Assembly (NCBI GenBank): GCA_002104905.1
Contig: MCFE01000332.1
Coordinates: forward strand, 1-64,000
Direction: 5' to 3'
Length of the DNA: 64,000 nucleotides
Source of the DNA: Basidiobolus meristosporus CBS 931.73
Taxonomy: Eukaryota > Fungi > Basidiobolomycota
Positions 21,186-64,000 of this stretch are shown here, one piece after another; within the stretch, counting starts at the first letter, position 1; each line of letters opens with the position of its first letter. A program made the translations under genes and the position numbers. Under the pieces are notes generated by a model. The model was not told the DNA's origin. It saw only the letters and a list, made by a program, of their open reading frames with translations, and ran no database searches.

Positions 21186-21349
21186 GGCCCCCATCCAAAG
21201 GATGGAGGGGTGGGGGCTTGGTGATTCCACAACTGGAGCATCCCCCTAGACCAACTGGGTGGGGGTGGGCTATGCCATCCTCATCCTTCCCCCACATCCT
21301 GCCAAGGAACATTGTACAGTCTTTGAAGCACAACCACAGTGCCAAAAGA

Positions 21350-28594: not shown

Positions 28595-29708
28595 TGTGGA
28601 GGTGTATAGGTCCAAGGGTGAGATACATCCAACACTTCTCAAGTGTTTTGTGTGTGGGGTGTTCACTGGGTGCAATAACCTCTGGCAAAAGCTTGCTGGG
28701 AATACTTGGGCTCTGACTCCAATATAATGTGATGGAGAATAAAGCCACAAGCTTGTCAAAGGCAAACTATTGAGCTACAATCCTCAACTTAGTTGGTGTC
28801 TTAACAAAAGTATGTGCTGGGTTCAGCATTGTGGTAGGGTAAGCATACCTCCCACATACAAATTTATTCATATAGCTATTATGTTGGACTTATCCATATT
28901 TTATCTTATCAGTATTGTCCCAAACCTCTTTTGCCCATATTATTATTATCCCCATATGATGTTTACACTGGCTAGTTATTAGCATTAGTTATCACAGATG
29001 TTATTCAGCTTTGTGATCTGTATATGTATCTACATTAGGCAAGTACCTGTGTCAGTACCCATGACACATGTCCTAAATCTGTGCTACCATCCCTACCATT
29101 TAAATATCATATATGGTATCTCTGTGTTGCATACATTTCAGACTACTGATCCCTAGCTGGGTGGATGTGCTGTGTCTTTTAGAACCTTCCAGGACATTCT
29201 TGGCATATTTTTAGCTCATATTGATGTCATCAAGAATTCCACTGATGCCTGGAATTTTCTAGAACCTTGTCATTAGTAATAACTTGGCAATCAGGAAAAG
29301 CATTCAAGGTAAGTCAATCAATCATCATTAAATCATCCCTTCTATCAGTAACACTTTACTTTTACTGATCAGCAGTTGATCACTGCACCTACCTTTAACA
29401 GTTACATCTCAGACTTGCCATCAAGGAGCTTTTCAGGGTAGTGCACAAGACACACAAAGGCCTTTGAAGACACTTAGAGCATATTGGTAGCTAGAGAAGC
29501 AGGAGCTTTTACCATAGTGACATGTTAGACTTATTCCGTTGATAGTGCCACATAGTGCCAGCCGGTTTATAGTGCCGGATTGATCTGACACTCTACGGCA
29601 CTATCTGGCACTATAATTTCTACCATTATGCCAGTGGTATGATACAGTTACTGGTAATTTTACTCAATCTTACTTATGTTGCTCAGAATAGTGCTTTCCT
29701 TGCTTTAT

Positions 29709-30593
29709 TTACTCTTCATAATGCTCCAGACACATTTCTCTCAGTGGATGTCTTCTTGTATGAGCATACTGTGCATTGATAAGTATCTTAACTATTTTAC
29801 CTATTCTGCTGTTTTCTCCTATATATGACTTTCCTCTGTATTTACCTGCCAATATGCTGAATCTCTTCAGATATCCAAATGTGTGCTCCACCCTTACTCT
29901 GAAATGATTAAATATCTCATTGTAGAGCTTCTGCTTCCTGCTAAGCACACCATTCCTTGGCTTCCTATAAGCTGTAATACATCCTAATCTCTGACAATCC
30001 TCTCCTATATAGGCCAAGTCTGCCATACATTTCTCCCCTCTACTGAATTCAGGATGATTCTCTACCCAGAGTGCTTTGTCATGCCTACTTCCAGCAAATG
30101 GCCCACTAAACCAGATGATGTTACCCTCAATGTCAGACAGTGCTGGAAACTTCACACAGTGTGCCTTGTACTTGCCAGAATAAAAGTGCCTCTGCCCTCT
30201 AGAAGGTCTGTTAATCCTCACTGGGAAGGTATCCAAAACACTCCTGATATGGAACCTGTTGCTGAACACTCTGGGATATGGAAGTCTATTGGAGCTTCCG
30301 AACCTAGTATTCCAAGCTTGCTCTAAGTCATTCATACCCTCTGCAAGGTGGTTCTCCATTGCTGTCAGCTGGGAATGAAAGCTTCTAGGACTTTTGTTGC
30401 CATGGATGGTGGGATGAAACCTTGTAGGGCAATAGTTCTTGTAATACCAGAGAAGCTTAACAAGGGATCTCCTTGAGTAGATTGGGGTTGATGGTCCACA
30501 GTACTTGGAATAGATCTCCTCCAGTGTGTCAAAAGGAAATCCAGTGGTAGTGATGGGATTGATGAGAAAAGACCATTCAGATGAGTAAGTCAT
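29709..30593 (-). CDS. DDE_Tnp_4 (IS5/Harbinger-like) transposase, uninterrupted 294-aa ORF
   Basis: VLDTFPVRINRP, YSGKYKAHCVK, SGPFAGSRHD, MADLAYIG, YRKP, LYNEIFNHFRVRVEHTFGYLKRFSIL. The putative triad is D(VLD), D(ADL) and E(VEH). Confidence 0.9.
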   Translation of the reverse strand: MTYSSEWSFLINPITTTGFPFDTLEEIYSKYCGPSTPIYSRRSLVKLLWYYKNYCPTRFHPTIHGNKSPRSFHSQLTAMENHLAEGMNDLEQAWNTRFGSSNRLPYPRVFSNRFHIRSVLDTFPVRINRPSRGQRHFYSGKYKAHCVKFPALSDIEGNIIWFSGPFAGSRHDKALWVENHPEFSRGEKCMADLAYIGEDCQRLGCITAYRKPRNGVLSRKQKLYNEIFNHFRVRVEHTFGYLKRFSILAGKYRGKSYIGENSRIGKIVKILINAQYAHTRRHPLREMCLEHYEE

Positions 30594-31426
30594 ATTAAAA
30601 TTGATGGATGATCGTATGGAGGCGGTTTGAATTGATTCGGCGCGATCTGCGTTATTTATCTGATTTTTAACACATTATGGTTAAATCTCCATCAATTGCC
30701 ATGTATCCCATCATTATGTCGCAAAAATCATCTGCAAACAATGCCTTGGTACTTTTATTGATGCTTTAATCATAGGTCTATAATCAAATAGGAAATCTGC
30801 GATTGATGTGATCTGATCCGTGTCAACGCAATCCAAGATGCATCATGCATAATATATGGAAAATTCAACAATCACATTAGTTTTCATATATATTTCATAT
30901 AAGACCAGGTTGATGCCAATATACTGCTGTATAAGTATCCAAATCCGTTGCTATGGTCCCCATACCAAGCCTCAACTCATCTTTAGTACAACCCAGACAA
31001 AACCCATCCCCCAGCTCACAAGCGCGGTCCGGACCGGAAAAGTCAATGTCAGATCCGTTTGAGTTCTCGCCAAATGATTTTAGTATGGCCCAAGTGTCTA
31101 TGATGAGCCTTCATACAGATATTTGGGTACTACTGATTAATCTAGCAGAACTAGATACCTCAGAGAGTTGACAAAGATGGAAGAATTTGAGTAGAAAGCT
31201 GTGGCATGAGTTCTACATCAAGATGCCAGCTAATGTATGTAAAAAGATATATAACAAGACAAGTATTGAAATCAAGAATGAGCTGAGAGTGAGGGGATTT
31301 GACAAGGAAGCTGTGCGGGAACGATTTTGCGCGCAATTTGCACAGTACAGGCCGGACGCGTCCGTTTGTGCCTCAACTTTGGGAACCAAAGAGATTTTGA
31401 ATGAGTTTTTGCCTCAAATGACTAAT

Positions 31427-32160
31427 AGACTTGTTCCGTTGGATAGTGCCACATTGAGCCATGTGTGCCAAATGATGCCATAGTGTGCCAGAGAGGTCAA
31501 GTGAGCCTATACTTGGCCACCAAGTGTGAAACATAGCTCTGCATCTTCATGTAAAGCAGCCCCTGTGTTTCACCCATTGCGCAGGAGAAAATCCATTTTT
31601 TGACCTTTTTTTGTGGATCAAAGTAGCTCAGGATGTGTAAGAGCACAGGAGAACTGAAGATATGCATCTGGTACTCAATACCCATGGCACTCTGAGTCTA
31701 GCTCCTGTAGCTTGTATCATGTCACAAAAATGAGCGGCACTATCTTGGTCCACTGGTACTATCTGGCACTATATTTAAATATTAGCCCTAAAGTAAGATC
31801 TATACAAAGCACTTATAGTGCCAGATAGTACCAGTGGACCAAGATAGTGCCGTTCATTTTGTGACATGATACAAGCTACAGGAGCTAGACTCAGAGTGCC
31901 ATGGGTATTGAGTACCAGATGCATATCTTCAATCTGCTTGTGCTCTAACACATCCTGCACAACATTGATCCAAAAAAAAAAGGTCAAAAAATGGATTTTC
32001 TCTAACACATTGGGTGAAACACAGGGGCTGCTTTGCATGAAGATGCAGAGCTATGTTTCACACTCTGTGGCCAGGTAGAGGCTCAATTGGCCTCTCTGGC
32101 ACACTATGGTATCACTTGGCACTCATGGCTCAATGTGGCACTATCCAACGGAACAAGTCT
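31427..32160. mobile_element. 734-bp non-autonomous foldback MITE carrying the PHIS-family TIR
   Basis: Perfect TIR AGACTTGTTCCGTTGGATAGTGCC at both ends. TSD AAT (31424-31426 and 32161-32163). Arms of about 345 bp are near-perfect inverted repeats around a 40-bp spacer (31774-31813). Confidence 0.92.
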
Positions 32161-32600
32161 AATGTACTACGTGATATATTAGTAGAGCTAAGTGGCTTCC
32201 AAGAACAATATACACAGGACTCATCCAGGCAACAGCTCCAAAGTATCAGACAGAGGGTAAGTGAATACCTTGAGGAATCAGATGGTGAGCTTCAGGAGGA
32301 AGAATACAGACCGCAAGCAACATTGTCCAGATTGCGCCAGCACGCCTTGCTGGATTCCCTACCATCTCTTGCAACCACAGCACGCCAGTGCACGTCAGTC
32401 CAGACCACGCCAACACCCTTTACCAGAACGCCCCACGTCAAGTCAATGCACGTCAGGTCAACGCGCGTGCTTCAGAGCAAAACTACCAGAACTCGCCAAA
32501 CTGCTCATTTAGACACAAGTCCATTGGAGCGGACCGAGTCACGTCAACATGCGGCATCACATCGAACTCAGCCAAGGGCCATCTCAACGCGTCAAGGCGC

Positions 32601-33671
32601 TGTAGTGGGGTGACAGTGACACCCACTGACAGATGTGCTCATTCCCTTATTTTCTACTTCCCTATATCTCTACTACACTTATTTTAGTTTTATCCCATTT
32701 GTCTTACCCAATCAGTACTATCCCATAAGCCGGTTGACTATCACACCTGCTTACCTTATTGCATAAGTTACCCCTCACTTTATGTAAGATTACTAGCTAT
32801 AAGTACTTCTATATTAGGCAAGTACCCGCGCCAGTACCCGTGACACATGATCAGCCTGCGTCACCATCCCTACCATTTCCATACCATATATGGTATCCCC
32901 ATGTTACACAGGTTTCAGAATACTGATCCCTGATTGGTTGAATGTGCTGTGCCTCTTAGAACCTTCCGGCACCTACTTAGAACATTCTTAGGTCATTCTG
33001 ATGTCATTAAGATTTCTATTGATCTCTGGAACCTTCTGGAACACCATGATTAGTAATCACTTAGCCAGTGAGAAAAGTATATAAGGGAGGCTATCCCTCA
33101 ACAATAAATCATCATCCCTTTTATCAATATACCAACTTGTTGATTAGTGTGATCACTGCTACCTGCTGCTACCTGAACTTCCAACCCTAAACCACAGGAC
33201 ACTCCCAGGAAACCGCGCTGACAGCCAACTGACCTTAGAGGCACTACTTGTGAGGAATACTCAGAGTAGGTATCTTTTATTATATTTGATTCTTTCCCAA
33301 GTTTGTTCTTGTACAGGCAAAGATACTTTTCTGTCTTTGTAACTATTGACCAAAGCTGCATTCTTATCAAGTCCCTGCTGGTGGAGTTTACAGTTGTTTT
33401 GACTTTGGAAGCTTTAGTACATTGTCATCTCAAAGGACGCTGAACCCAGCACATACTTTTGTTAAGACACCAACTAAGTTGGGGATTGTAGCTCAATAGT
33501 TTTCCCTTGACAAGCTTGTGGCTTTATTACCCTTCACATTAGATTAGAGACAGAACCCAAGTATCCCTAGCAAGCTTTTGCCAGAGGTTATTGCACCCAG
33601 TGAACACCCCACACACAAAACACTTGAGAAGTGTTGGACGTATCTCTCCCTTGGACTTATACACCACCACA
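32601..33671 (+). mobile_element. Solo LTR of Gypsy family A (1071 bp)
   Basis: TGTAGTGG...CCACCACA with a 4-bp TSD GCGC (32597-32600 and 32672-equivalent flank at 33672-33675). Reverse-complement homologous to 34873-35712, 28595-28829 and 40378-41094. Confidence 0.92.
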
Positions 33672-35712
33672 GCGCGCCTGCGCGTGCCGTTTTGCCTGAC
33701 CATCAGCAAGTTACTTCTGGTGAACTGACTGATGATGACCAACATGAAGTGACTCAACCACCGGAGCCCTTGGCAAGTAAAAGAACGCGTCAGCGCGTGG
33801 CACTACAGGCCAGTTCAGTTGGTTCAGTTGGTTCAGTTGGAGCGATTCAGCGCGGCCAAGCTGCAGCATAGCACTCATCAACTAGGAGGCAAAATACTGA
33901 CTACAAATACACAAGTAGCCAAGATGATAGTCAGCCAGGAAGTAGTATAGGTGTGCAAAGTGAGTCACTACCAAATGCTTCAGTAGTAATCCCTGTGAGA
34001 AAAAAACCCAGGAGAAGATGATGCGATTGCTTTGAATCGCTCACATTTGTAATGATCCCAACAACCCTTTTTTTTTGCAATCCGAATCAAGCCATTGCAA
34101 ATCAGTGATCATCAAATTTTTGATATAAGTAATATCAAGGTTGTCTCACATTTGAGACAGAACCCCTATAAATAAACACCCTGCATATATATACGTCATC
34201 TGTAATACCAGTGCAGCTATTGGATCTGTTTTGCACCTACACGATCGCTTGCGTGCTAGCTATGACACCTTGCCCAATCACTAGGATCAGGGATTTACTT
34301 GCTCAATGGGCTAAATGGGATATTTGATGGCAAATCAGGTAGCTTTTTCAGTAGTCAATGAGCCAATTGGGGGCTGCCAGCTTCAGGATACTTTTGGACC
34401 AATTAACCACTGAGATACCGTCCAATTGGAGTGAGGGTAACCAAAATGGTAAGTATCAGTGTAGCTTATAGTGTGATACACATTTATTTCCATTTACATT
34501 AAAGAAACATATCCAAATACCGGATTTTACCTGCCATTGTAGCGGTATCCGATCGCGCACGTGATGCAAGCATTACAAGTTGGCGCGATCATCCGCGCCA
34601 ACCTCATCGTGTCAGATTGTGCCATAGTGTGCAAGATTGTCCCGCATAGTGCAAAATTGTCCAAGAACAATCCTGCCTTCTGGTAGCTATTATATTGCGC
34701 CCAATCGTTCTTTGCAACCGCAGATTGCGCCGCGCGCCCTGGCACGGTACGGTGGAACAAGTCTGTTGACAGAGACATCAGCAGTTTGGAAACAGAGGTT
34801 ATTGCACCCATCAGACACCTGACACACCTTGAGTTGTGTAGCTTCTCCCAGGAATACCTCTACAACACCACAGCATCCCTTGAGATGACAATGTACTAAA
34901 GCTTTCAAAGTCAAAACAACTGTGAACTGCACCAGAAGGGACTTGATAAGAATGCAGCTGCGGTCAATAGTCACAAAGACAGAATAGTATCTTTGCCTGA
35001 ATCAGAACAAATGTGGGAAAGAATCAAATATAATAAAAGATACCTACTCTGAGTATTCCTCACAAGTAGTGCCTCCAAGGTCAGTTGGCTATCAGCATGG
35101 TTTCCTGGGAGTGTCCTGTGGTCTGGGATTGAAAGTTCAAGTAGCAGCAGGTAGCAGTGATCACACTAATCAACGAGTTGATATATTGATAAAAGGGATG
35201 ATGATTTATTGTTGAGGGCTTGCCTCCCTTATATACTTTTCTCACTGGTTAACTGATTACTATTCATGTTGTTCCAGAAGATTCCAGATATCAATAGAAA
35301 TATTAATGACATCAGAATGAGCTAAGAGTACTCTAACTAGGTGCTGGAAGGTTCTAAGAGGCACAAAACATCCAACCAATCAGGAATCAATAATCTGAAA
35401 CCTGTGTAACATAGGGATACCATATATGGTATAGAAATGGTAGGGATGGTGACATGGTTTGACCATGTGCTACAGGTACTGGCACAGGTATTTGCCGAAT
35501 ATAGAAGCACTTACAGCTAGTGATCTTACATAAAGTGAGGGATAACTTATGCAATAAGGTAAGCAGGTGTGATATTCAGCCAGCTTATGGGATATTACTG
35601 ACCAAGTATGACAAATGGGATAAAACTAAAATAAGTGTAGTAGAGAAATAAGGAAGTAGAAAATATGGGAATGAGTACATCTGTCAGTGAGTGTTACTGT
35701 GAGCCTGCTGCA

Positions 35713-35726
35713 TCCACCCCCCTCTC
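35713..35726 (-). other. Polypurine tract of Gypsy A
   Basis: GAGAGGGGGGTGGA on the minus strand immediately precedes the TG of the 3' LTR (35712). Confidence 0.85.
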
Positions 35727-38700
35727 AGCTATGAGCTTGGGTCAAAGCAAACTAATCCAGATGTGCAAAGTTCCTATGCTTGAATAACTTAAGTTGGTTC
35801 CCTGCCACTGGTGCTCTCAATTGGGTGTTGTCAAGCTCAGATATGTAATAACTTCTGTTTCCAATCACTTTGGAAATGAGGTAGGGGCCAGTCCATTTGT
35901 TGTCAAACTTCCAACTCCATTGTTTGTCCAGGGTGGAATCATAGAGTAATACTGGGTCTCCTAGTGATGGTGGCCTTGGTCTTGTTAAGTGTGACTTGTC
36001 AAATGGCACTTTGTTCTTCAGCCATGTATCCTTAAGTTGTTCAGCAGCTCTGTTGATATTTGGGTCATGGTGATCAAGTTGCTGTATACCAGTAGCTAAG
36101 ATGTCTTCAGCCTGCATATTAGATTTCCAATCCAAGGAGTTCCAAGTAACTATGTCTAACTCAACTGATAGTATGCAGTCATGTCCAAAGAGTAGCTCAA
36201 GTGGAGATAATCCAGTTGTTGTCTGGGTAGTAATTCTATCTGCCCTGTGTGCAAGATGTAATTGCTTTGGCCACAGTGTTGTATTATTCTCACAGGTCTT
36301 GGCAAGAGAGCTTACTAGTGGTCCATGTCCTCTCTCTACAGTTTGATTGGCTTGAGGATGGTAGGCTGTAGTAAAAGCAATGTGTATCTTGTACTCTGAG
36401 CACAACTCCTGGATTGTTACAGATGTCATCTCTCTTCTGTCAGCAACAAACTGTTGGATGCAGCCAAATCTGCAGATAATGTCTTCAAGTATAAATCTCC
36501 ATATTGTATGGCTCTTGTTGTTGAGCAAGGCTTGAGCTTATGCCCATCCACTAAGGTCATCTCTAGAAACTATCAGGTACTTCTTTGATCCAGCTGTTGG
36601 CATGTGGACAAGGTCAATACCAACATTTTGCCATAGACAGATTGTGTAAGTAGGATGCAGTGGTTCTTCATAATGCTTAGAGGATCTCTTCTGGCAGGCT
36701 ATACATGACTCAACAGAGTGTTGGATATCATAGTACATGTTTTAACAGTAGTACCTCTGAGCTGTGGTATTGTAGGTGGCTTCTTGTTCTCTATGTCCTC
36801 CTGGTTCTCCTTGGTGGATACATGTAATGATGTTCAGTTGCTCTTGTGGGGTAGTGACTACTCTTCCTGGCATAAGTCCAGGCTTCACACTGTAAAGGGA
36901 AGATCATCTTTGAGACAGTAGTGGGGTGCCTTCTTTTTGAGCTTTCTAAACTCATGAATTTCCATCCAACTAGGTTTCTTGAGTGTCCTAGATATACTTT
37001 GATCAGGCTCCAAGTGGTTCTCTCTTAGTCTTTGATGGCAATCTGTTGGATCTCTGCATCAATCATATCATCAAAGTAAGGGTCCAAGTCTTCAAATAAT
37101 TGTGGTCCCTTCCTGGAGAGTGCATCAGCCACAACATTTGTCCTGCCATGGATATGTCTGACCTCAGAGTCAAACATTTTTAGCCATGCCATCCATTTGT
37201 TTGTGGCATTATCAGGTAGGTCAGGCTGATTGAATATTCCTATAAGTGGCTTGGCATCTGTCTCCAGGATGAAATGCGTTATGTAGAGTTGTGACTTCTG
37301 CTTCCTCAGCATCTTCACAGCTCCTAGTAGCTCTCTCTTAATCTGCAAATATCTTCATTCTCTAGGAGAGAATAGACAGCTCTCATATCTGCAGGCATGG
37401 TGGTTGCATCTTCATCATCTTGACCAAGTAGTGCTCCAGCTCCTATGGGGCTTGCATCAACTGTCAAAATAGGTGGGCATTCAGTGTTCTGATAGTCAGG
37501 AGGTCTTAGAACTGGTGGAGATACTATGGCCTCTTTTAGTAATTACATGGCTTCTTCTTGTTCTTGTCCCCATATAAATGGGGTATTCTTTCTCTGTAGG
37601 CGGTAGATTGGTTCTGCTATCTCAGAAAATGTTGGGATCCAGATACTAAAGAACCCACAAGCTGCCACAAAGCCACAAGCTTGTGTTAGACCTGTGGGGG
37701 TAGGCCAGTTGCATATTTTTGTGTCTTGGAGTCTCCAGGTGATTGACCAAAGGTGTTGCATTTTTGTCCAACAATGGATATCTCTGATATACCAAAGATG
37801 CTTTTCTCAGCACTGATGGTGAGTCCAGCATCTTTGGTGGCTCCTAATATAGCATCATTGTTGGAAATATGGTCCTAGACAAACTTTCTTACTCAGGTAC
37901 AACTTCAGTGGTGTCCTGGAATTTTGGACCTTTGATGCCTATGTCATCAACAAAGACAGCAAGTTTCCCTGGTATAAACTGGTACAGCACATTCACCATG
38001 CATCTCTGGAACTAAGCCACAGAGTTTGTAGCCCCTTGGCTGAGTCTTGTCATCCTTAACACTCCAAATGGTGTCTGGAGTGCAAACATATCTTTTGATG
38101 TCTCATCTAGGGGGATCTGGTCATATGTTGAGTAGATGGAGTGACCACTAAAGCTCTCTGCAAAGTCATCAGCAGATGGAGGTATTGCAGCATCTCCAAT
38201 AGTGACAGCATTTGCAGGTTGCAAGTTTTGTTTGAATTGGAGCTTTCCATTCTCTTTTGGTCACAAACCATCTGTTGGCATAAGGTCCATGGCAAGGCTC
38301 TAGGACACCAGCATCAATCTTCTTCTTAAGTAGATCATGCACATTAACATGGAGTCCTCTGTGCAGTTGGTAAGGCTTATAAGACCAAGGTGTGTATGGC
38401 TCTGTTTAAATCTTGGCAGGATTTTCAACCAATGTCTTTAAGAGCACCATCTCCTTGTCATTATATGAGTAAACCTTATCATGCCTTTTCAGGGTTTCTT
38501 CAAATAATAAAATTTCCTCTGGTGTTAGGTTTCCATCACCAGTGATAAGTTGCATAAGTCTCTTGAGTGTAAGTTGCATATTTCTGGTGGTCTGATGTAA
38601 TCAGCAGGTTGAGATCCATAAGTCAAAGGTGTAAGTGATGGTCTAACCTTCTGTTCAACCGTCTTGTATTTTGTTCAAACTATGGCTGTCTGCTCCTGTA

Positions 38701-40356
38701 TACCTAATGAGCAGCTCCAAATGTTGGGGTGTATATTGTCATGCTTCTCATCATCTATAAAAAGATGCATCTTCTGGCAAGCAGTATATATACTCGTATT
38801 GTGGGGTGTTACACCACAGGACATTGACTGTAGCCCTGGGTTTGATCCTTGTAAAGTATATCACACTGACCCATCAGAGTAACTGATAGTTGTAGCCTTA
38901 GTACTGGTCTCCCATGGTCTGCCTAGCTGAAGGTCAAAGTTTGCCTTCTGGCAGATAAAGAGGGGAAGCCAGACCTTGATTCCTTGTACTTCAATAGGAA
39001 ACTTGTGCATTACACCATAGAGTGGACTAGATCCTGAGTTCGCATCAGTCATGTTTCATCCAATATCTATATCAACAGGGAGTAGCTCCTTACTTCTAAG
39101 TGTCTTCCAGAAGTCTAGCAGCATAACACCAATCTCTGAGCCACTGTCAATATCACAGTCAACAGGGTCATCATACTTATATCCTTACACCACAGCGGTT
39201 GCAACTGAGTAAAAGGTCTTATATTCAGTAGTGTTGTCATCCTTTTGGAGGACTTCATGGCTTGTCTGAACTCTATGGGTGTCCATTTGTTCAACAGCTT
39301 GTTGTCTTTGTCTAAGCTGCTCATTGAAAGTCTTCCTAACAGATGGGGATATACTCATGATTTCTTTAACCAACAAAGTAAGGTTCTGCTTCAGCAGCTT
39401 CTCAACAATCAGCTGAGGGTTTGAGTAGCTTGCTATCTTTGAGGTCATCTGAACATGAGGCAACAAATCTTGAGTGGGCAGTATACCAGGCCTTTTGTCA
39501 ATGATAACTTCAGGCTCTTCAAATTGTGGTCTTTTAATGATGGGTTTGGTAGCAAAGGCATTGACTTTGTATTGTCTTTTGTCAAGGCTGCTTGGACTCA
39601 CTGTATGAGCTCCAATATAGGCTTCAGCAGTAATCTTTCTGGTTGCTGAGTTAGATTGTCTGGAAAAGAGCTCTCATCCTTCCCTTTCCCAAATTGGTGG
39701 GGATCCTTCTACCTTCCCTGTCAGCAAGCATTCCATTGGCATCAAACTGTAAAGCTCCTTCTCTAAGTAGCTGACAAAGCTCTGAGCATTCTCATCTGGC
39801 ATGCTGAGTAGAGTCATGCCAGATGCAGTATCTGGGCAAAGGTCTTTGGCTCTCAGTACCTCCTTTGGCTGAGCCACTAATTTTGAAGGCTAGCTTTGGT
39901 AGCTGTTCATCAAGTTGGTCAATTCTGTTGGTAGTGTATGTCTGATGCAGTCCTTCCAAAGTGTCTGAGGGCTTCTATTCCATAGTATATCTGAGGTCTA
40001 CCATACTTGGTCTGTATGTAGGTCTTGATTAAGGTCCAGTCAGTGAGAATGTCTCCTTGTCTGAAAAGCTTAGTGGTAATATTATTGGTGCAGTAGTAGG
40101 GTAAGTCTTCATCCATTTCTTGTTCAGATAGGCTGCACATCTTGCAGAGCAGTTCCCATTTGAATATGAAGCTTTCCACATTCTTTGCATCAAACTGTGG
40201 GGCTCCATGTGACAGTGGTAATGGCATAGAGTTCATTTTGGGTAGGTAAGTTGTTATACAATCTTGATAATATAGGTAGTCTCATTGCAATAAGTGGATA
40301 ATTGCTCAAATCTTCTGGTAAATCTTGTTGGGTCCAAGGGAGCTTTTATGAACCCC

Positions 40357-40373
40357 CCCCACATTGGGTGCCA
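40357..40373 (-). other. Primer binding site of Gypsy A, tRNA-Lys(CUU)-like
   Basis: TGGCACCCAATGTGGGG lies 4 nt after the 5' LTR. It equals the known Lys PBS TGGCGCCCAACGTGGGG with both CpGs deaminated. Confidence 0.75.
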
Positions 40374-41169
40374 AATATGTGGTGGTGTATAGGTCCAAAG
40401 CAGAGATACATCCCACACTTCTCAAGTGTTTGGTGTGTGGGGTGTACACCAGGTGCAATAACCTCTGGCAAAAGCTTGCTAGGAATACTTGGATTCTGAC
40501 TAAAATCTAATGTTATGGGGAATTAAGCCACAAGCTTGTCAAGGGAAAACTATTGAGCTACAATCCCCAGCTTAGTTGGCATCTTAACAAAAGTATGTGC
40601 TGGGTTCAGATTCCTTTGAGATGACAATGTACAAAAGCTTCCAAAGTCAAAACAACAGCAAACTCCACCAGCAGGGACTTAATAAGAATGCAGCTGTGAT
40701 CAGTAGTTACAAGGACAGGAAAGTATCTTTGCCTGTACAAGAACAACCTTTGGAAAGAATCAAATATAATAAAAGATACCTACTCTGAGTATTCCTCACC
40801 AGTAGTGCCTCCAAGGTCAGTTAGCTGTCAGCATTGTTTCCTGGGAGTGTCCTGTGGTCTGGGATTGGAAGTTCAGGTAGCAGCAGGTGGCAGTTATCAC
40901 ACTTATCAACAAGTTGATATATTGATAAAAAGGATGATATTTTATTGTTAAGAGCTTACCTCCCTTGTATATTTTTCTCACTGGATAAGTGGTTACTAAT
41001 CATGGTGTTCCAGAAGGTTCCAGAGATCAATTGAAATCTCAATGACATCAGAATCAGCTAAGAGTACTTTAAGTAGGTGCTGGACGGTTCTAAGCTTATA
41101 TATGGTAGTGAGTCACGCCAAAGGGAAAATAGTGTTGCATATATGTGTGTACATGGTGCCACAACATTA

Positions 41170-42140: not shown

Positions 42141-42149
42141 ACAGTGACC

Positions 42150-48579: not shown

Positions 48580-51500
48580 GTTCAAGAAAGAAGCAGCCTT
48601 CCTCAAGATGTTCAATAATGAAGAATGGAAGAATGCCATGCAGCAAATCCTGGCCCAACAGCAACTGTTACTCCAGATCCTCAGCCAACAGCAACAAGGA
48701 ATGACTACCATGGCTCAGAGCCAGCAAAGCCCTATCAAGAGCAACTTTAGTGTGAAGGTCAACCAGTACCATGGCAGAGTCAATGAAAACCTGGGAACTT
48801 GGCTCTTCCAGACTGAAGAAGCTTGTAAAGCTAAAGGAATTGCTCCAGAAAGTAAGTTGCATTATGCAGCTTCTTACCTGGCAGATGCAGCCTTACAGTG
48901 GTACAACAACAAGAGCAGGTCAGCCACCATGATGGGATGCTCTACAATCTCTACCTGGGATGAGTTTGTGTCGGAAATTCAGTATGCTTTTGAACCTCCA
49001 CACCAGCAGACACTACTAAGAAGGAAGTTAAAGACACTCAGACAGAAAGGAATGGTGCAAGAATACATCTATGAGTACAGATGTCTACTTGGACAAATTA
49101 AAAAAATGGACCCCTTAGATCAAGTTGAATACTTTATTGATGGGTTGAAAGAAAGAACTTGCAAGGAAGTGAATTACCAAAGACCTCAGACTATTGAAGA
49201 AGCCATCACGATTGCCATTGACTATGACTCAGCTATGTTTGGAGTTGGGAAGCCTACAGTGACTAAGCAGAAAGGCTACAATCATTATGAAAGAAGACAG
49301 TCCAAAGCAGTACCAATGGAAATAGATGCTATGCAGAAGAATCCTGCCTTGGAAGAATGTAAGAAGAAAGGACTTTGCTTCAATTGCCACCAGCAAGGAC
49401 ATATTGCAAGGTACTGCCCTCAGAGAAGAAATGGACACCAGCCATCAAGAACCTTTAACCGTATTGAGGCCATGGGGCATAGTAACATGAAGGATGAACT
49501 TGAAGAAGACTCAGAACTCACCTTCCACATGACAGAAGAATACCTATCCCAGATGACCTCAAACTCAGGAAAGCTATTACACTTGAATGGAGTAATCAAT
49601 GGAGTACCTGCTAAGATCATGATTGACTCACGAGCATTGCATGAATACATGTCAGAGCAATTTGCCTTGAAAGCTGGAATCAACTCAGAACCTACCAAAT
49701 CAACTTCAGTCTCCACAGCTGATGGGAACTCCCACATAATCAACCATATTACCCAGCCAGTAAGAATGAAGATCAATGACTATGAAGAAGACCTACAGGC
49801 TTATATATTTGGGAACTGCAAGTTTGACCTTGTACTTGGAAAAACCTGGCTATTTTGTTGTAATCCATCAATCAACTGGAGAACCGATGCTACTCAGATC
49901 CAAAAAGACAACAAGACCTATGAGCTATTACCTGCCAGGCTGGATTTCAACTTGGTCAATTCCAGTATGTGTGAGACAAGTGAACTTAGCAAGACCCAGT
50001 TCTGTAGAGCGCTTAGAAAAGGTACTCAGATGTTCCTCATGGCGGTTTTACAGGAGGATTCCTCTACCCCAGCACCCCAGCAGGTCCAGACACTCTTGAA
50101 GAAATATTCAGATGTGTTTCCAGATGAGCTTGTAAGCCTACCACCAGTCAGAGATGTGGATCATGCCATTGACACAGGAGATAGCCCTCCAGTGAGCAAG
50201 ACACCTTACAGAATGAGTCCATTGGAATTGGAGGAAATGAGGAGACAAATTGATCAGCTATTGGGGCAAGGATATATCAGGCCCAGCAAGTCACCCTGGG
50301 GAGCACCAGTGCTTTTTGTGAAAAAGAAGGATGGAACACTTAGGATGTGCATTGACTACAGAGCCCTGAACTCCGTTACCGTCAAGAATAAGTACCCCAT
50401 ACCTCGGATTGATGAGCTTTTGGACCAACTTAATGGAGCCACTATTTTCAGCAAGATTGACCTCATGTCAGGATACAACCAGACTAGGGTGAAGCCAGAA
50501 GACATCCCTAAGACAGCATTCAGGACCAGATATGGACATTACAAGTACCTAGTCATGAGTTTTGGCCTCACCAATGCCCCTGCAACTTTCATGACCCTGA
50601 TGCAGACTGTCTTCCAGGAGTACTTAGACAAGTTTGTGATAATCTACCTGGATGACATATTGATATACAGCAAGACAGAAAAGGATCACATGGTGCACAT
50701 TGAAAAGGTCTTGAAGAAACTAAGAGAGAACAAGCTATATGGCAAGCTAGCCAAGTGTGAATTCTTCAAGGAACACATGGAATACCTGGGACACATAGTG
50801 ACTAGCACAGGAGTGACCTTAGACCCTAAGAAGGTCAAAGTTATAAAGAATTTGAAGCAGCCCCATAGTATATCAGAACTCAGATCATTCCTTGGAATGG
50901 TTTCCTATTATCGGAGATTTGTCAAGGCTTTTGCAAGTATTGCAGCCCCTTTAACTGATATCCTCAAGAAAGACAATACCTACAAGTGGGACATAGCTTG
51001 TGAGACTGCCTTCCAGATGCTCAAGAATGAACTTGCTAAGCTGCCAAGCTTAAGAATACCAGACTTCAGAAAAGAGTTCCCTCTGTGCACAGATGCTTCA
51101 GATTATGCAATTGGTGGAGTGCTGAGCCAAGAACACAGGGAAAGGACTACCCTGTTGCCTTTGAATCCAAGAAACTGAACTCAGCAGAACAAAACTATCC
51201 AGTCCATGAGAAGGAGATGCTTGCTATAATACACTGTTTGAAGACATGGAGATGCTATATTGAAGGAGTCAAATGCACTGTGAAGACTGATCATACCTCC
51301 CTCAAGTATATATTTACTCAGAAGGTACTCTCTAGAAGAATGACAAGATGGAGTGAATACATTCAGCAATTTGACCTGGAGATTGTCTACTGCCCTGGAA
51401 AAAACAACACGGTTGCTGACGCCTTATCAAGATTAGATCAAGTTGCACAGCTTAACTTGGTGCATGAATCAGATTGGCCTAGCCTATTACTAAAGTACTT

Positions 51501-53118
51501 GGGGGACTAAGCCATTCCTAATGCGGTGGATGAAGATATCAAGAAGATAATCCATGATGAAGCCAGCAAATTTGTAGTACAGGATGAAACACTCCACCAA
51601 ATTGTTGATGGAAGCCCTATTGCCTATTGCCCTTATGTTTCTTGCCTGAATTTAATATATAAGCTACACAATGAATATGGACATCTTGGGATTGAAGGAA
51701 CCTATAGCCTTGTGAAAGCCAGAGCATGGTGGCCCAGAATGAAACAAGATATTGAGAAGCTAGTGAAAACATGCCCAAACTGCCAAATCAATCAAGGCCA
51801 GCCACAAAGAATTGCCAAACTCTTCCCTTTGGAGCCTGTAAGACCATTTGAGAGATGGGGAATTGACTTAATTGGAAGATTGCCAACTACCAGGAAATGC
51901 AACCGTTGGATCCTAGTAGCAATTGACCATGCCACTAAATGGCCAGTTGCTAAAGCTGTACCAATAGCCAGTGAACAAGAAGTTGCAAGTTTCATTTACC
52001 ATGAGATCCTGATGAAGTATGGATGCCCTGTGGAGATCTTATCTGATAGAGGAGCAAACTTTATGGCAAAGACATTAGAGGCTTACCTGGAAATGCAGTA
52101 GATCAGACACTTGAAAACCTCGGCATATCACCCCAGAACTAATGGAGTCACTGAGCGGTTTAATGGATTATTTGGAAAAATCCTCACCAAGTATGCAAAT
52201 GGAGTTGTCAGTAGATGGGATGAGTATATAGACCAAGCACTCTTTGCATGCAGAGTCAGAGTACACAACACCACCCAGCAATCACCATTTTACTTAGTGT
52301 ATGGATGTGAACCAAGGATTTCAGGAGATCTCACACAACCAAAGCTTACAGACACCTTAGAAGATGAACTCAGTCAGCCAAGTAGACACCAGCAACTGGA
52401 ACAAAGACGTCAAGAGGCACAGACCAAAGTATCTCAAAGTGCAGAAAAGATGAAGCCGAGATTTGATAAGACTATAGCACCAGAAGCATTGACAGTTGGG
52501 AACTTTGTATTGCTAAGAAACAACACTTGGAAGAAGTTTCAGCCACAATGAACAGGACCATTCAAGATCATCAGAGAATGTCCATTTGCAACTTACCAAC
52601 TGGTGGACAAACAAGGCAATATCCGGGAAGACTTAGTGCATAGGGACAGACTCAAGCTTGCAAGACTTGCTGATAATACTGAACCATCAAGATATTGGTA
52701 TCACAAGAAAAGAGGTTCAGGAGAACCCTCTCAACTTTAGTAGGGGAGAATGTTATGATCTGCCACTTGAATGTTTAAGTTAGATCAGTTTTTAGTCAAA
52801 TCAATTAGTATATGTTTAGGTTATCAGTATATCAGTATTATCTATCAAATCAGTAGCATTAGTCAGCAAATGAATCAGCAGATCCTTATTGAACAGAAAT
52901 AGACATATTAAGCAGGATCTTATTGGGTGATGATGATGCAATCAGATGAGTCATCAGCCACAACCTACATTAGGAAATACAATTAGTCAGCAATTGATCT
53001 GGCAAAATGTTTATAAGGAGCTGCTGGAACCTCAATAAAAATCAGTTCAAGTTTTAGTGAATACAATACTAGCTAAACTCCCTATTCCTCTACAACTCTT
53101 ATACCAAGACTTGTAACA
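48580..53118 (+). mobile_element. Ty3/Gypsy family C element lacking its 5' LTR; 3' LTR 52751-53118
   Basis: gag-PR-RT-RH-IN order. PPT AGGGGAGAA precedes TGTTA...TAACA. One frameshift at about 51150 and stops at about 51508, 52099 and 52549. Confidence 0.92.
48608..51178 (+). pseudogene. Gypsy C gag-pol reading frame (capsid, CCHC knuckle, protease, RT, start of RNase H)
   Basis: [21 protein letters not shown] (DSGA altered), [37 protein letters not shown] and [14 protein letters not shown]. The likely ATG is at 48608. Confidence 0.9.
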
Positions 53119-55750: not shown

Positions 55751-56082
55751 CTGAAGAAGAAGGCTAACAGAATTATTTGGACCTATCTCTCCTAACAACA
55801 GTACTTTACATTAGCGTGGCAAAACTCTATATTGCAATGAGAAAACACCTATTGAAAAAAATGCCAAGGATATTCTTGGGGCCATCTGCCACTAGTAATC
55901 AGTCTTCTAGTTGATGGTGTGATGTTGTGGCTTTAGAAGTAGCAGGTTTCCACTAATATCAGTGATGGGGACTCTGAGGGCTTACTACTACTTCCTGCCA
56001 AGATCATTCTGGGATGTAGTTTACTACATGCTTAGTACAAAAAAAAACCAGCATGCAACTGGCTTCATACAACTCAGAAACT

Positions 56083-58488
56083 AGACTTGCTCCATTGAAT
56101 AGTGTCACATAATGCCAGCCTGTTTACAGTACTAGACTGATCTGGCACTCTTTGGCACCATCTGGCACTGTAACTTCTACCATAATGCCAGTGGTAGGAT
56201 ATAGTTACTGGTAATTTTACTTAATCTTACTTATGTTGCTCAGAGTGTTGCTTCCCTTGCTTTATTCACTCTTCATAATGCTCCAGACACATTTCTCTCA
56301 GTGGATGTCCGGTTGTATGAATGTGCTTTGCATTGATAAGTATCTTAACTATTTTACCTATTCTGCTGTTTTCTCTTATGTATAACTTTCCAATGATTAA
56401 ATATCTGATTGCAAAGCTTTTTCTTCCTGCTAAGCACACCCTTCCTTGGCCTCCTATAAGCTTTGATACATCCTAATCTCTGACAATCCTTGCCTGTACA
56501 AGCCAAGTCTGCCATACATTTCTCCCCTCTACTGAATTCTGGATGATTCTCTACCCAAAGTGCTTCATCATGCCTACTTCCAGCAAATGGCCCACTAAAC
56601 CAGATGATGTTACCCTCAATGTCAGACAGTGCTTGAAACTTAAAACAGTGTGCCTTGTACTTGCCAGAATAAAAGTGCCTCTGCCCTCTAGAAGGTCTGT
56701 TAATCCCAACTGGGAAGGTATCCAAAATACTCCTTATATGGAACCTGTTGCTGAAAACGCTAGGATATGGATTCATAGAGGAGCTTCTGAACCCGGTATT
56801 CCAAGCTTGCTTTAAGTCACTCATACCCTCTGCAGGGTGGTTCTTCATTGCTGTCAGTTGGGAATGAAAGCTTCTAGTACTTTTGTTGCCATGGATGGTG
56901 GGATGAAACCTTGTAGGGCAATAGTTCCTATAATAGCAGAGAAACTTAACAAGGGATCTCCATGGGCAGATTGGAGTAGATGGTCCAGAGTACTTGGTAT
57001 AGATCCCCTATAGTGTGTCGAAAGGAAATCCAGTAGTAGTAATGGGAATGATGAGAAAAGACCATTCAGGTAAGTAAGTCATATTAAATTGGTAGATGAT
57101 CTGGCGTTGAATTGATTTGGCACAATCAGCTTTATTTACTTGATTTTCCATGCATTATGATTAAATCTCCATCAATTGCCATGTATCCCCTCATTATGAT
57201 GCAAAAATCATCCTCAAACAATGACTTGGTATTTTTATTGATGTTTTACTCAGAAGTCTATAATCAAACAGGAAATCTGCAATTGATGTGATCTGTGTTG
57301 AAATATTGGACTATTTGGTATCATTCAGCAGCTAAAAATTTACTTAACAATTCTAGGCTAGTCTTAGTCACTGTAGGACTTATTTACTGCCTTAATTTTG
57401 CCACTTTCTCCAGATATATGATCTTATGATTATTCCCTTATAGTCGGGATCAAATTAGCACTATTACCAAACATTATGTACTAACCCTGAAACTGTTACA
57501 GAATGCTCCTGAATATTGAGAAACCCTCCCTACTTAGTGTTGCAGCTGTATTACTTCTACAAAGGTATAAATACTGAGCTGCTTTATGAATAAACAACAG
57601 TTCAACTATTATCACTATTTCTTGATAAGTTCCTTGTATCCAAATCACTTCTTAAATTGCAACAAGAACCACTTTCAGGTGTGCAAAGTAAATCACAACC
57701 AAATGCTTCAATAGCAATCCCTGTGAGAAAAAAACCTAGAAGAAGATGATATGATTGCATCAAGTTGCTATTATTTGTCATGATCCAAACAACTCATTTT
57801 TTTTGTAATCCGCATCAGGGCATCACAAATCAGTGATCACTAAATTTTTGATTTAAGCACCATGGAGGTTGTCTCACATTTGAGACATGAGCCTATAAAT
57901 AAACACCCTGCATGTTTATACATCATCTGTGGCACCAGTGCAGCCATTTGATCTGATTTGCACCTGTACAATTGGTTATGTGTCAGCTATGACACCTTGT
58001 CCAATCACTAGAATCAAGGATTTACTTGCCTAATGAGCAAAATGGGATATTTGATGGTAAATCAGGTAGCTTGTGTAATGATTAAATAGCCAATTAGGGG
58101 CTGACAGCTTTGGGATACTATTGTACCAATTAACCATTGAGATACCATTTAATTGGAGTGAGGTAACCAAAAAGGTAAGTATCAGTGTAGTTCATAGTGT
58201 GATATGCAACTTTTTAATTTACATTAAAGAAACAATCCAAATACCAGATTTTACCTACCATAATAGTGGTATCTGATTGCGCACATGATGCAAAAATTAC
58301 ACGTTGGTGCAATCATATGTGCCAACCTCATTGTGTCAGATTGTGCCATAGTGTGCAAGATTGTCCCACATGGTGCAAAATGGTCCAAGAGCAATCCTGC
58401 CTACAGGTAGATACCATATTGCACCTGATTGTTCTTAGGGATTGCAGATTGCACTGCTCACCCAGGCATGGTACAATGGAACAAGTTT
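56083..58488. mobile_element. PHIS-family internally deleted copy
   Basis: TIRs AGACTTGCTCCATTGAATAGTGTC and GGCATGGTACAATGGAACAAGTTT. TSD ACT (56080-56082 and 58489-58491). The transposase has lost the RVEH segment and ORF2 is replaced by filler. Confidence 0.9.
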
Positions 58489-58499
58489 ACTATCCTGAT

Positions 58500-59220: not shown

Positions 59221-60494
59221 TTTTAGAGAATGTACATAGGTGTAGGAGGTATTTGAGTGACTGGGGCCCAAAGGTTAGAGAAGTGGCAGAAAACTACTCA
59301 AAAGACACTGATGCATAGTAGCAAAGTACAATATTGATCAAGTTTTTTGTGAGATCTGAAATGCAGTATCTTTAAGCAGTTTCTGTTGAGATATAGGAGG
59401 GATATGTTGGAAGTGAAATGAAGAATCAGAAAAATAAGTGATACTCACTTGATGAAATATTGAGTTACAGCACAGTATATATACTTGTTGCCAAACTACA
59501 TAAATGTACCTTTTTAATCACTATTGAGGGAGTCTCTGGAATACACGTGTCAAGCTTTAGCTCATTGGGACAAGTTGCACATTTTCCTAATATTCTATAC
59601 TTTTCTTACTCACAGTAAATAGCAGATATCCTAAAACAAATTTGCAACTCATTATTCTGAGATACATCATTTAACAAAGTGCTAGTTCATAACATATTAT
59701 AATTAGGATGACTTCCAATCATTTCAACACTCCCACTCACATATAATGTTCATATTTTTATGAGGTTCCTATGGTATTGTGCATCTTGCTGTTGAAATTA
59801 AACCTGCAATTAACCATATAACTGATTGGACAAACATACCCTCCAATATATGTTGGGGTGGCTTATCATCTGTAATAACTAACTATAAGCCTATATTATT
59901 AATCAAATACCTCATATCAAATTACTTGGAGTCAGAATTCTGATCTTATCAAAAAATACCTACGGGAGAGTATCATCCACTTGATTGGGAAGAAGCTCTT
60001 CCAATACTACTCATATCCAATCATACTCTCTGTCATTAGGTAGCTGTGCTTTCAGGTCTTCTGCTGCTTTTTTCTTGAGCATAAAGTTCTAAAATTGGCA
60101 AAGCTAGGATGTAGCTTCCTTCCAGTAGATCTGAATCATCCAGAGCTCTGATTTATAGTAAAATTCACTGCAACTACTCTCAATGTATCCATAATGAGAT
60201 CTGGGTAATAAGATTCTTCATATATTCCAAATATCATCTGCTTGAGCCAAGAACTGGTCTTCATTGTGGAAGCCTTATTCTTCATCAGTTGGGCTAATTT
60301 TTCCTCTTCCCAACTAGTGCTCTCAATGTGCTTAGCCTAGGTTTTCTTCATTTATTAGACTAGTTCCGTTGGATAGTGCCATATACTGCCAGCCTGTTTA
60401 TAGTGCCAGATTGATCTGGCACTCTATGGCACTATCTGGCACTAAAATTTCTACCATGATGCCAGTGGTATGATACAGTGAGTGGTAATTTTAC

Positions 60495-61424
60495 TCAATT
60501 GTATTTATGTTGCTCAGAATAGTGCTTTACTTGCTTTGTTAACTGTTCATAATGCTCCAGACACATTTCTCTCAGTGGATGTCTTCTTGTATGAGCATAC
60601 TGTGCATTAATAAGTATCTTAACTATTTTACCTATTCTGCTGTTTTCTCCTATATATGACTTTCCTCTGTATTTACCTGCCAATATGCTGAATCTCTTTA
60701 GATATCCAAATGTGTGCTCTACCCTCACTCTGAAATGATTAAATATCTCATTGTAGAGCTTCTGCTTCCTGCTAAGTACACCATTCCTTGGCTTCCTATA
60801 AGCTGTAATACATCCTAATGTGTGACAATCCTCTCCTATATAGGCTAAGTCTGCCATACATTTCTCCCCTCTACTGAATTCAGGATGATTCTCTACCCAG
60901 AGTGCTTTATCATGCCTACTTCCAGCAAATGGCCCACTAAACCAGATGATGATACCCTCAATGTCAGACAGTGCTTGAAACTTCACACAGTGTGCCTTGT
61001 ACTTGCAAGAATAAAAGTGCCTCTGCCCTCTAGAAGGTCTGTTCATCCTCACTGGAAAGGTATCCAAAATACTCCTTATATGGAACCTGTTGCTGAACAC
61101 TCTGTGATATGGAAGTCTATTGGAGCTTCTGAACCTAGTGTTCCAAGCTTGCTCCAAGTCATTCATACACTCTGCAAGGTGGTTCTCCATTGCTGTCAGC
61201 TGGGAATGAAAGCTTCTAGGACTTTTGTTGCCATGGATGGTGAGATGAAACCTTGTGGGGCAATAGTTCTTGTAATATCAGAGAAGCTTAACAAGGGATC
61301 TCCTTGAGTACATTGGGGTTGATGGTCCACAGTACTTGGAATAGATCTCCTCAAGTGTGTCAAAAGGAAATCCAGTGGTAGTGATGGGATTGATGAGAAA
61401 AGACCATTCAGATGAGTAATTCAT
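60495..61424 (-). pseudogene. DDE_Tnp_4 transposase with one premature TGA (Trp codon) near the N-terminus
   Basis: Colinear with 29709-30593. LL*YYKNY replaces LLWYYKNY, and the original stop has mutated, extending the C-terminus. Confidence 0.85.
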
Positions 61425-61785
61425 ATTAAAATTGGTGGATTATTGTATGGAGGTGGTTTGAATCAATTTGGCATGATCTCTGTTATTAATCATATTTTTA
61501 ATGCATTATGATTAAATTTCCATCAATTACCATGTATCCCATCATTATGTTGCAAAAATCATCCGCAAACAATGCCTTGGTACTTTTATTAATGCTTTAC
61601 TCATAGGTCTATAATCAAATAGGAAATCTGCAATTGATGTGATCTGATCCGTGTCAATGCAATCTGAGATGCATCATGCATAATATATGGAAAATTCAAC
61701 AATCACATTAGTTTTCATATACATATTTCATATAAGACCAGGTTGATGCCAATATACTGCTGTATAAGTATCCAAATCCTTTGCT

Positions 61786-63033
61786 ATGGTCCCCATACCA
61801 AGTCTCAACTCATCTTTAGTACAACCCAGACAAAACCCATCCCCCAGCTCACAAGCATGGTCCGGACCGGAAAAGTTGATGTTGGATCCATTCAAGTTCT
61901 TGCTAAATGATTTTAGAAGGGCCCAAGTGCCTATGATGTGCCTTCATACAGATATTTGGGCACTACTGATTAATCTAGCAGAACTAGATACCTTGGAGAG
62001 TTGACAAAGATGGAAGAATTTGAGTAGAAAGCTGCGGCATGAGTTCTACATCAAGATGCCAACTGATACATGTAAGAAGATATATAACAAGACATGTATT
62101 GAAATCAAGAATGAGCTGAGACTGAGGGGATTTGATGAAGAAGCCGTGCGGGAACAATTCTGCGCACAATTTGCACAGTGCAGGCCTGACGCATCTGTTT
62201 GTGCCTCAACTTTGGGAACCAAAGAGATTTTGAATGAGTTTTTGCCTCAAATGGCTAATGTACTGCGTGATATATTAGTAGAGCTAAGTGGCTTCCAAGA
62301 GCAATATACACAGGACTCATCCAGGCAACAGCTCCAAGGTATCAGACAGAGGGTAAGTGAATACCTTGAGGAATCAGATGGTGAGCTTCAGGAGGAAGAA
62401 TACAGACCGCAAGCAACATTGTCCAGATTGCACCAGCACACCTTGCTGGATTCCTTACCATCTCTTGCAACCACAGTGTGCCGGTGCACGTCAGTCCAGA
62501 CTATGCCAACACCCTTTACCAGAGTGCCCCACGTTGAATCAACACACATTGGGTTGATGCGCACGCTTCAGAGCAAAACTACCAGAACTTGCCAAACTGC
62601 TCATTTAGACACAAGTCCATTGGAGCGGACCAAGTTGGGTCAACATGCAGCATCACATCAAACTCAGCCAAGGGCCATCTCAACGCGTCAAGGTGCGCCT
62701 GCGCGTGCCATTTTGCCTGACCATCAGTCAGTTACTTCTGGTGAACTGACTGATGATGACCAACATGAAGTGCCTCAACCACCAGAGCCCTTGGCAAGTA
62801 AAAGAACGCGTCAGCGTGTGGCACTCCAGGCCAGTTCAGTTAGTTCATTTGGAGTGATTCAGAGCGGCCAAGGTGCAGCATTGCACTCATCAACTAGGAG
62901 GCAAAATACTGACTACAAATACACAAGTAGCCAAGATGATAGTCAGCCAGGAAGTAGTATAGGTGTGCAAAGTGAGTCACTACCAAATGCTTCAGTAGTA
63001 ATCCCTGTGAGAAAAAAACCCAGGAGAAGATGA
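61786..63033 (+). CDS. PHIS ORF2, MADF/Myb-SANT-like protein (415 codons with one internal TGA at 62002-62004)
   Basis: The 61786-62004 and 62020-63033 ORFs are in the same frame: DIWALLINLAELDTLES*QRWKNLSRKLRHEF. The C-terminus is basic (RKKPRRR). Confidence 0.65.
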
Positions 63034-64000
63034 TGCAATTGCTTTGAATTGCTATTATTTGCAATGATCCCGACGACCCATTTTTTTGCAATCTGAATTA
63101 AGCCATCAAAAATCAGTGATCATCAAATTTTTGATATAAGTAATATCAAGGTTGTCTCATATATGAGACAGAACCCCTATAAATAAGCACCCTGCATATA
63201 TATATATCATATGTAATACCAGTGCAGCTATTAGATCTGTTTTGTACCAACCTAATTGCTTGCGTGCTAGCTATGACACCTTGTCCAAACACTAGGATCA
63301 AGGATTTACTTGCTCAATGGGCAAAATGGGATATTTGATGGCAAACCAGGTAGTTTGCTTAGTAGTCAATGAGCCAATTGGGGGCTGCCAGCTTCAGGAT
63401 ACTTTTTGGACCAATTAACCACTGAGATACTGTCCAATTGGAATGATGGTAACCACAATGGTACGTATCAGTGTAGTTTATAGTGTGATACACATTTATT
63501 TCCATTTACATTAAAGAAACATATCCAAATACTGGATTTTACCTGTCATAATAGCGGTATCCAATTGCGCACGTGATGCAAACATTACAAGTTGGCACAA
63601 TCATCTGTGCCAGCCTCATTGCGTCAGATTGTGCCATAGTGTGCAAGATTGTCCCACATAGTGCAAAATTGTCCAAGAACAATGCTGCCTTCTGGTAGCT
63701 TTAATATTGCGCCCAATCATTCTTTACAACCACGGATTGCGCCACGCGCCCTGGCACGGTACAATGGAACAAGTCTATTATCAGGGATATTGGACTCTGA
63801 CTGAAGCTACATATTGTGGTGCTACCCTATGAAAAATGGATTGGTCCTCCAGGTACATCCAATCTGGGTCAGCCATCAAGTTCCCATCAGGAGACAGCTA
63901 TACTACCAGCAGCTTGGAATTAATGACCATCTACACAATCTTATGACAGGATCACAACAGTGTTTTACTAATTTACAACTAAACAAAGTTGATAGAATAT

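Follow-up and report, generated by a model that had tools for sequence, protein, structure and literature searches.

Canonical PIF/Harbinger DNA transposons, such as Ping/Pong and zebrafish Harbinger3_DR, carry two genes, generate 3-bp target site duplications (TSDs), and mobilise miniature inverted-repeat transposable elements (MITEs) in trans. The Pangu group of the PHIS superfamily is defined by the TSD 5'-ANT-3', which was confirmed at paralogous empty sites, and was placed next to bacterial IS5 (Han et al. 2015, Mobile DNA 6:12, PMC4482050). Pangu elements have a mean length of ~3,487 bp, inverted repeats of 11-40 bp usually starting with AG or GG, and two open reading frames (ORFs), one for a DDE-only transposase and the other for a partner mostly without a known motif (PMC4482050). 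Fungal Pangu families include Pangu-1_Tmel to Pangu-3_Tmel from Tuber, Pangu_Tsti from Talaromyces, and Pangu_Tmes from Tremella, as well as families from Melampsora and Puccinia; none of the 34 families in that study originates from an early-diverging fungus or Basidiobolus (PMC4482050). Pangu corresponds to Harbinger2 in Repbase (Kojima 2025, PMC12730594). A huge expansion of PIF-Harbinger was reported from Basidiobolus at the superfamily level (Muszewska et al. 2017, PMC5751038). Here, the first 64,000 nucleotides of contig MCFE01000332.1 from Basidiobolus meristosporus CBS 931.73 (hereafter the window) were analyzed, and a cut-and-paste DNA transposon family was found, which is assigned to the Pangu (Harbinger2) group with a probability of about 0.87.

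The family and its copies were defined by self-BLAST and repeat finding on the window (Table 1). One repeat family is present at five places between 20.9 and 63.8 kb, and four of the five pieces share the same orientation within 43 kb. The three TSD-bounded copies, two partial copies and one MITE listed in the initial annotation were all recovered, including the clustering of five pieces in 43 kb. The pairwise identity is 93% between copies D and B, 86% between fragment A and either of them, and 78-81% in the pairs with copy C. In copy C, ~1.3 kb of ORF2 is replaced with 381 bp of another repeat, and 68 bp is deleted elsewhere. What remains in fragment A runs from the 5' part of the transposase gene through the spacer and ORF2 to the right end; a 734-bp stretch of Gypsy-related repeat lies between it and the inverted right-end fragment. 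The MITE is ~88% self-complementary with perfect 15-bp terminal cores at both ends, and its similarity to the ends of the coding elements is limited to 28-35 bp. The solo-long terminal repeat (LTR)-like insertion in copy B is outside this transposon family.

Table 1. Positions in the window of the family members, their genes, nested insertions, and neighbouring features (aa, amino acids).
Feature	Position	Strand	Description
Copy D	60357-63776	+	Complete, 3,420 bp; flanked by ATT (60354-60356) and ATT (63777-63779)
Copy D transposase	60540-61424	-	Pseudogene; codon 49 is TGA (61278-61280), natural stop lost
Copy D ORF2	61786-63033	+	415 codons, one in-frame TGA at codon 73 (62002-62004), otherwise open
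Copy B	29527-34764	+	Full-length, flanked by GTT/GTT; two nested insertions inside
Copy B transposase	29709-30593	-	Intact 294-aa ORF; the sole intact transposase copy in the window
Copy B ORF2, first part	30953-31426	+	TGA at 31169-31171; resumes at 32164-32600 and from 33674 beyond the insertions
MITE	31427-32160		734-bp hairpin nested in copy B; AAT/AAT duplication
Solo-LTR-like insert	32601-33671		1,071 bp bounded by TG...CA, with GCGC duplicated (4 bp); nested in ORF2 of copy B
Copy C	56083-58488	+	Flanked by ACT/ACT; internally deleted, old (~80% identical to copy D)
Fragment A	21923-24377	+	5'-truncated, without the left 980 bp; right flank ATT
Inverted right-end fragment	20979-21188	-	210 bp; outer flank AAT on the + strand, ATT in element orientation
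LTR copies related to the solo-LTR-like insert	34871-35700, 40378-41094, 28595-28827		
Apparent LTR-bounded element	34871-41094		~100 bp right of copy B
Gypsy-type ORF set	48509-52101		gag-protease-reverse transcriptase-RNaseH-integrase
Histone H3 variant	8864-9295		Present in public databases; groups at ≥90% with a protein of Basidiobolus ranarum, in line with a Basidiobolus host

All ten family ends carry the 15-bp core AGACTTGTTCCRTTG, starting with AG (AGACT), with 0-2 mismatches. The core is followed by four variable bases and then GTGCC, and these together constitute the imperfect 24-bp terminal inverted repeat recognized in the initial annotation. With up to 3 mismatches allowed, the window contains the 15-bp pattern 15 times, where 4.1 occurrences would be expected, and a count of 15 was not attained in any of 100 shuffles; chance origin of the family ends is thus excluded. 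Eleven occurrences have 0-2 mismatches, and all ten family ends are among them. The first 100 bp of copy D contain the subterminal motif GTGCC/GGCAC 5 times, whereas roughly 0.2 occurrences would be expected (our own estimate).

Four insertions are flanked on both sides by exact 3-bp duplications: ATT for copy D, GTT for copy B, ACT for copy C, and AAT for the MITE. The single ends of the two fragments both adjoin ATT when read in element orientation. ANT is thus seen at five of the six scored targets, while base composition alone would give it at ~9% per site (our own estimate). The target site of the MITE is uninterrupted in copies D and A, which retain a single AAT. These two paralogous empty sites fix the size (3 bp) and the sequence of the duplication. 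The ANT-type TSDs proposed in the initial annotation are therefore seen in ATT, ACT, AAT, and both single flanks, but not in the GTT of copy B.

The intact transposase ORF of copy B, the one open frame that had been noted, encodes a compact DDE_Tnp_4 protein as proposed; the Pfam match has an E-value of 2.5e-22 and covers profile positions 1-153 of 158. A catalytic region alignable with PIF/Harbinger/IS5-type transposases at an E-value below 1e-4 marks members of the PHIS superfamily, and the DDE_Tnp_4 match places the protein there. No other relevant domain beyond DDE models was matched in Pfam, and the best NCBIfam model was an IS5-family model, below the cut-off of the model. The residues D121, D192, E236, and K243 do not vary among 18 relatives. 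The short length of the transposase is genuine, because relatives of 276-296 aa align collinearly with it from the first to the last residue. In copy C, the transposase gene has a stop codon and the 68-bp deletion, which shifts the frame and removes the catalytic E region. An exact look-up of the transposase sequence returned no record.

The transposase gene is almost free of CpG. Only 1 CpG is present in the 885-bp ORF of copy B, and 0 in that of copy D, and all 27 arginines are encoded by AGA or AGG. The CpG observed/expected ratio in the rest of copy B, outside the transposase ORF, is 0.55-1.03.

The transposase gene and ORF2 are divergently oriented, and the start-to-start spacer measures 359 bp (copy B) or 361 bp (copy D), in agreement with the head-to-head layout and ~360 bp of intergenic DNA described before. 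The second protein has a length of about 340-415 aa. The ORF2 protein of copy D has a tail rich in S, T, Q and P and ends with KKPRRR. In copy B, where the transposase frame is open, ORF2 is destroyed and both nested insertions lie in it. ORF2 of fragment A has lost the start codon and contains one frameshift and six in-frame stop codons, including the TGA (22584-22586) shared with the other copies. The same in-frame TGA followed by C is found in each of the three copies in which this part of ORF2 survives (D, B, and A). Independent decay from CGA to TGA in all three seems unlikely, because copy B keeps 88 of 103 CpG sites; 40 of 103 are kept in copy D and 13 of 103 in copy A, and only 5 of 103 in the three copies together. 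No in-frame GT...AG pair with a credible donor or acceptor was found across the TGA. An ATG at codon 91, downstream of the TGA, represents an alternative start.

The ratios of nonsynonymous to synonymous substitutions (dN/dS) were judged against off-frame and non-coding controls, which gave 0.4-1.7, mostly 0.5-1.0. These controls were needed because CpG transitions dominate the substitutions. The in-frame dN/dS is 0.28-0.46 for the transposase, 0.18-0.25 for codons 74-208 of ORF2, and 0.24-0.46 for the 72 codons upstream of the TGA, where the counts are small. The tail of ORF2 (0.47-0.72) is not distinguishable from the controls. Constraint is clear for the transposase and for ORF2 codons 74-208, and only suggestive for the 72 codons before the TGA. 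Both genes were under coding constraint while the transposon lineage was active. Polarising private substitutions by majority rule was also tried and dropped, as it is confounded by shared CpG decay. Production of the ORF2 protein through programmed stop-codon read-through or downstream re-initiation is conceivable, although we regard it as a long shot. If true, it would be a built-in dosage control of the accessory protein of a DNA transposon, adjoining a transposase gene purged of CpG in a heavily CpG-mutating genome.

ORF2 had been labelled MADF/Myb-like in the initial annotation. It was searched here as two pieces on either side of the TGA, never as a joined read-through product, since the putative domain spans the TGA. 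A word-based search against 5.8 billion proteins revealed no match, the search against PDB gave only weak unrelated matches (best E-value 0.05, Nup107), and nothing relevant was found in PHROGs. The first match in a language-model Atlas was a Myb_DNA-bind_4 cluster with a sub-threshold score of 0.76, and it was absent when the search was repeated with the N-terminal 135 residues alone. The single-sequence AlphaFold model of the ORF2 core is all-helical but poor, with a predicted local distance difference test (pLDDT) score of 48. With the Pfam scans of the two pieces also blank, the MADF/Myb-like label is unsupported. Han et al. 2015 (PMC4482050) reported Myb_DNA-bind_4 in ORF2 of two out of their 34 Pangu families, and by analogy with these two the label is a reasonable guess.

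An exhaustive HMMER search revealed 19 proteins below an E-value of 1e-30, of which the best is 62% identical to the transposase and the next at most 43%. This best match is the nearest among 15 billion proteins; its locus (L001) stops inside a terminal repeat resembling that of the window family, and a comparable subterminal motif of the ATAGTGCC type also occurs there. A metagenome contig (L009, 27% identity) contains a complete element of 3,434 bp with 16-bp repeats, ATT/ATT flanks, and two genes in head-to-head orientation. Its ORF2 exon was modelled at pLDDT 41, and tblastn of ORF2 against the loci of relatives found no homology. One-sided searches for ends in short contigs of relatives yielded mixed flanks, and these ends were not validated.

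In a tree of 42 sequences, the window transposase and the 62% relative are paired with support of 100/99, and the pair sits within compact proteins of ~290 aa. A bacterial set with HTH_Tnp_4 forms a separate, long-branched clade. The only named relatives of the transposase are cyanobacterial insertion sequence (IS) transposases with HTH_Tnp_4 and DDE_Tnp_4, at 29% identity. A profile search seeded with a bacterial sequence collected mostly HTH_Tnp_4 + DDE_Tnp_4 proteins, of which those with a name are cyanobacterial, and brought in no further relative from eukaryotes. The nearest named bacterial relative, an IS from a Leptolyngbya chromosome (L025:1427-2474, CP071923.1), is 1,048 bp long, or 1,044 bp between the AGACTT tips, and its 20-bp perfect inverted repeat contains the terminal hexamer AGACTT, as in the fungal element. 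Its duplication, read from a single copy, is either AT or the unequal pair TAT and ATT.

In some relatives with 34-37% identity, among them L005:6019-7131 and the protein P0002, the C terminus is extended, and an aromatic-rich motif is common to these extensions. The extension looks chromo/Tudor-like by eye, and might serve a sister lineage as a targeting module. Just downstream of the transposase of another relative, on a metagenome contig, a 383-bp MITE-like inverted pair (L020:2143-2525) has termini starting with AGAGTTGTGCGACC and is flanked by TAC and CAC.

The host-like genes of the window end near 20 kb, and beyond this point lies a 44-kb gene-poor tract with Gypsy-type gag-pol ORFs and LTRs. 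The CpG observed/expected ratio is 0.14 at 20001-64000 vs 0.70 at 1-20000, and the G+C content is also lower in the repeat tract than in the first 20 kb. Methylation-driven mutation of repeats, or a similar CpG-directed process, would fit this depletion. Across the family copies the ratio ranges from 0.10 to 0.57. Copy B is the youngest and the least CpG-decayed copy, and it has received the MITE and the LTR insertion since its own insertion. Not one copy keeps both genes intact, so the window contains no autonomous copy. The proposal that the family is probably recent gains little from the retained open frame of copy B, as the copies are 7-20% apart, most are heavily CpG-decayed, and autonomy is lost in all of them.

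The assignment to Pangu is based on the TSD, the ends, the length, and the gene layout, and the ATT/ATT flanks of the distant relative L009 lend it indirect support. Several observations weigh against it. The tree includes no labelled references of Pangu, Harbinger, Nuwa, ISL2EU, or Spy, and the top 20 relatives of the transposase are metagenome or read-archive proteins on contigs of 1-9 kb. The TSD sample consists of six insertions, all within the window, and GTT at copy B, one of the four complete duplications, is a non-ANT target and a true exception, because both flanks agree. In a second complete relative (L006), the repeats are perfect and start with AGAGTTGTATCC (AGAG), but the flanks, ACT and TCA, differ. 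Both pieces of ORF2 lack a relevant match in Pfam at E-values up to 10; the role of ORF2 as a partner is proposed by analogy, with no domain, homologue, or confident fold obtained. The family could represent a separate IS5-derived or HarbingerS-like PHIS lineage, outside the Pangu clade, which shares the ANT preference. The 29% identity to cyanobacterial IS transposases as the sole named relatives, the IS5-family model in NCBIfam, and the hexamer AGACTT of the Leptolyngbya IS would all suit such an origin, 294 aa lies near the lower limit of Pangu transposase lengths, and HarbingerS is a lineage related to Harbinger2/Pangu (Kojima 2025, PMC12730594). However, Pangu is defined by the composition of the TSD, and ANT is observed here; closeness to IS5 is expected, since Pangu itself adjoins IS5 (Han et al. 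2015, PMC4482050). The bacterial set is separate and long-branched in the tree, and the length, ends, two-ORF layout, and motif-less ORF2 are all within the published Pangu range. A separate lineage is thus considered improbable.

Scarcely credible is the reading that the ends were misdrawn by 1-2 bases and that the family is a canonical PIF/Harbinger, Nuwa, or ISL2EU element. An ANT duplication always lets the inverted repeat grow by one base (T...A), which leaves boundaries drawn from a few copies prone to shift errors. When the boundaries are shifted by one base, however, the flanks become unequal in every copy, so a TWA or 2-bp AT reading fails, and the empty MITE target in copies D and A has exactly one AAT. 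No copy has the TWA (TTA/TAA) of canonical PIF/Harbinger. The observed ATT, GTT, ACT, and AAT are neither the CWG nor the C|TNA|G of Nuwa I/II, and no match to Myb, expected for the Myb_DNA-bind_5-type ORF2 of Nuwa, was obtained in the Pfam scans of the two ORF2 pieces. The proven 3-bp duplication is distinct from the 2-bp AT of ISL2EU and from the absence of a TSD in Spy, and no match to THAP or YqaJ, the gene content of ISL2EU, was found in the Pfam scans. Within the preferred Pangu assignment, the clustering of the five pieces could be ascribed to local hopping of an active element, to which the shared orientation of four pieces and the landing of a same-family MITE in copy B would correspond. 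The divergence and the unequal CpG decay of the copies indicate that they are not the products of one recent burst, and local hopping is judged unlikely. The clustering needs no special explanation because the tract from 20 kb on has few genes and is crowded with LTRs and Gypsy-type elements; it is best read as passive accumulation in a repeat island.

In transposition of this family, the transposase, with the catalytic residues D121, D192, and E236, would cut at the AGACT termini and make a 3-nt staggered cut at ANT targets. By analogy with two-protein PIF/Harbinger systems, the ORF2 protein may bind the GTGCC-type motifs clustered inside the ends, and bring the transposase there and into the nucleus. 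The MITE has the family termini and was inserted in copy B with the same kind of 3-bp duplication; it was probably mobilised in trans. All five copies of the 43-kb cluster are decayed residents of a repeat-rich, CpG-depleted tract.

With this family, the little-studied Pangu/Harbinger2 group reaches into an early-diverging lineage of fungi. The family also gives the PIF-Harbinger expansion in Basidiobolus (PMC5751038) a defined family, of which the ends, target, genes, and MITE are known and which helps the repeat annotation of the Basidiobolus genome. The compact two-gene system is open to transposition testing. It is not a new kind of element but a new family within the known Pangu group. 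As suggested in the initial annotation, it is probably an undescribed family, since no published Basidiobolus family was found in the consulted literature and the nearest protein is only 62% identical.

Compared with the IS5 family, the element has a similar transposase of ~300 aa with the N-terminal TG-hydrophobic motif, the catalytic blocks, and the AGACTT tip, whereas the IS elements are ~1 kb long with one gene, and their transposases are 29% identical and fall in a separate clade. It shares with canonical PIF/Harbinger the DDE_Tnp_4 superfamily, two genes, MITE derivatives, and the 3-bp size of the TSD, but the TSD is ANT instead of TWA, the transposase is much shorter, and neither Myb/SANT nor MADF is detectable in ORF2. 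The closest agreement is with Pangu: the ANT TSD with empty sites, the AG-starting repeats, a length of ~3.4-3.5 kb (3,420 bp), the DDE-only transposase accompanied by a motif-less ORF2, and the affinity to IS5. The family differs from the listed Pangu families in its host, Basidiobolus, which is outside Dikarya, in one GTT target, in the nearly CpG-free transposase gene, and in the in-frame TGA seen in all ORF2 copies here.

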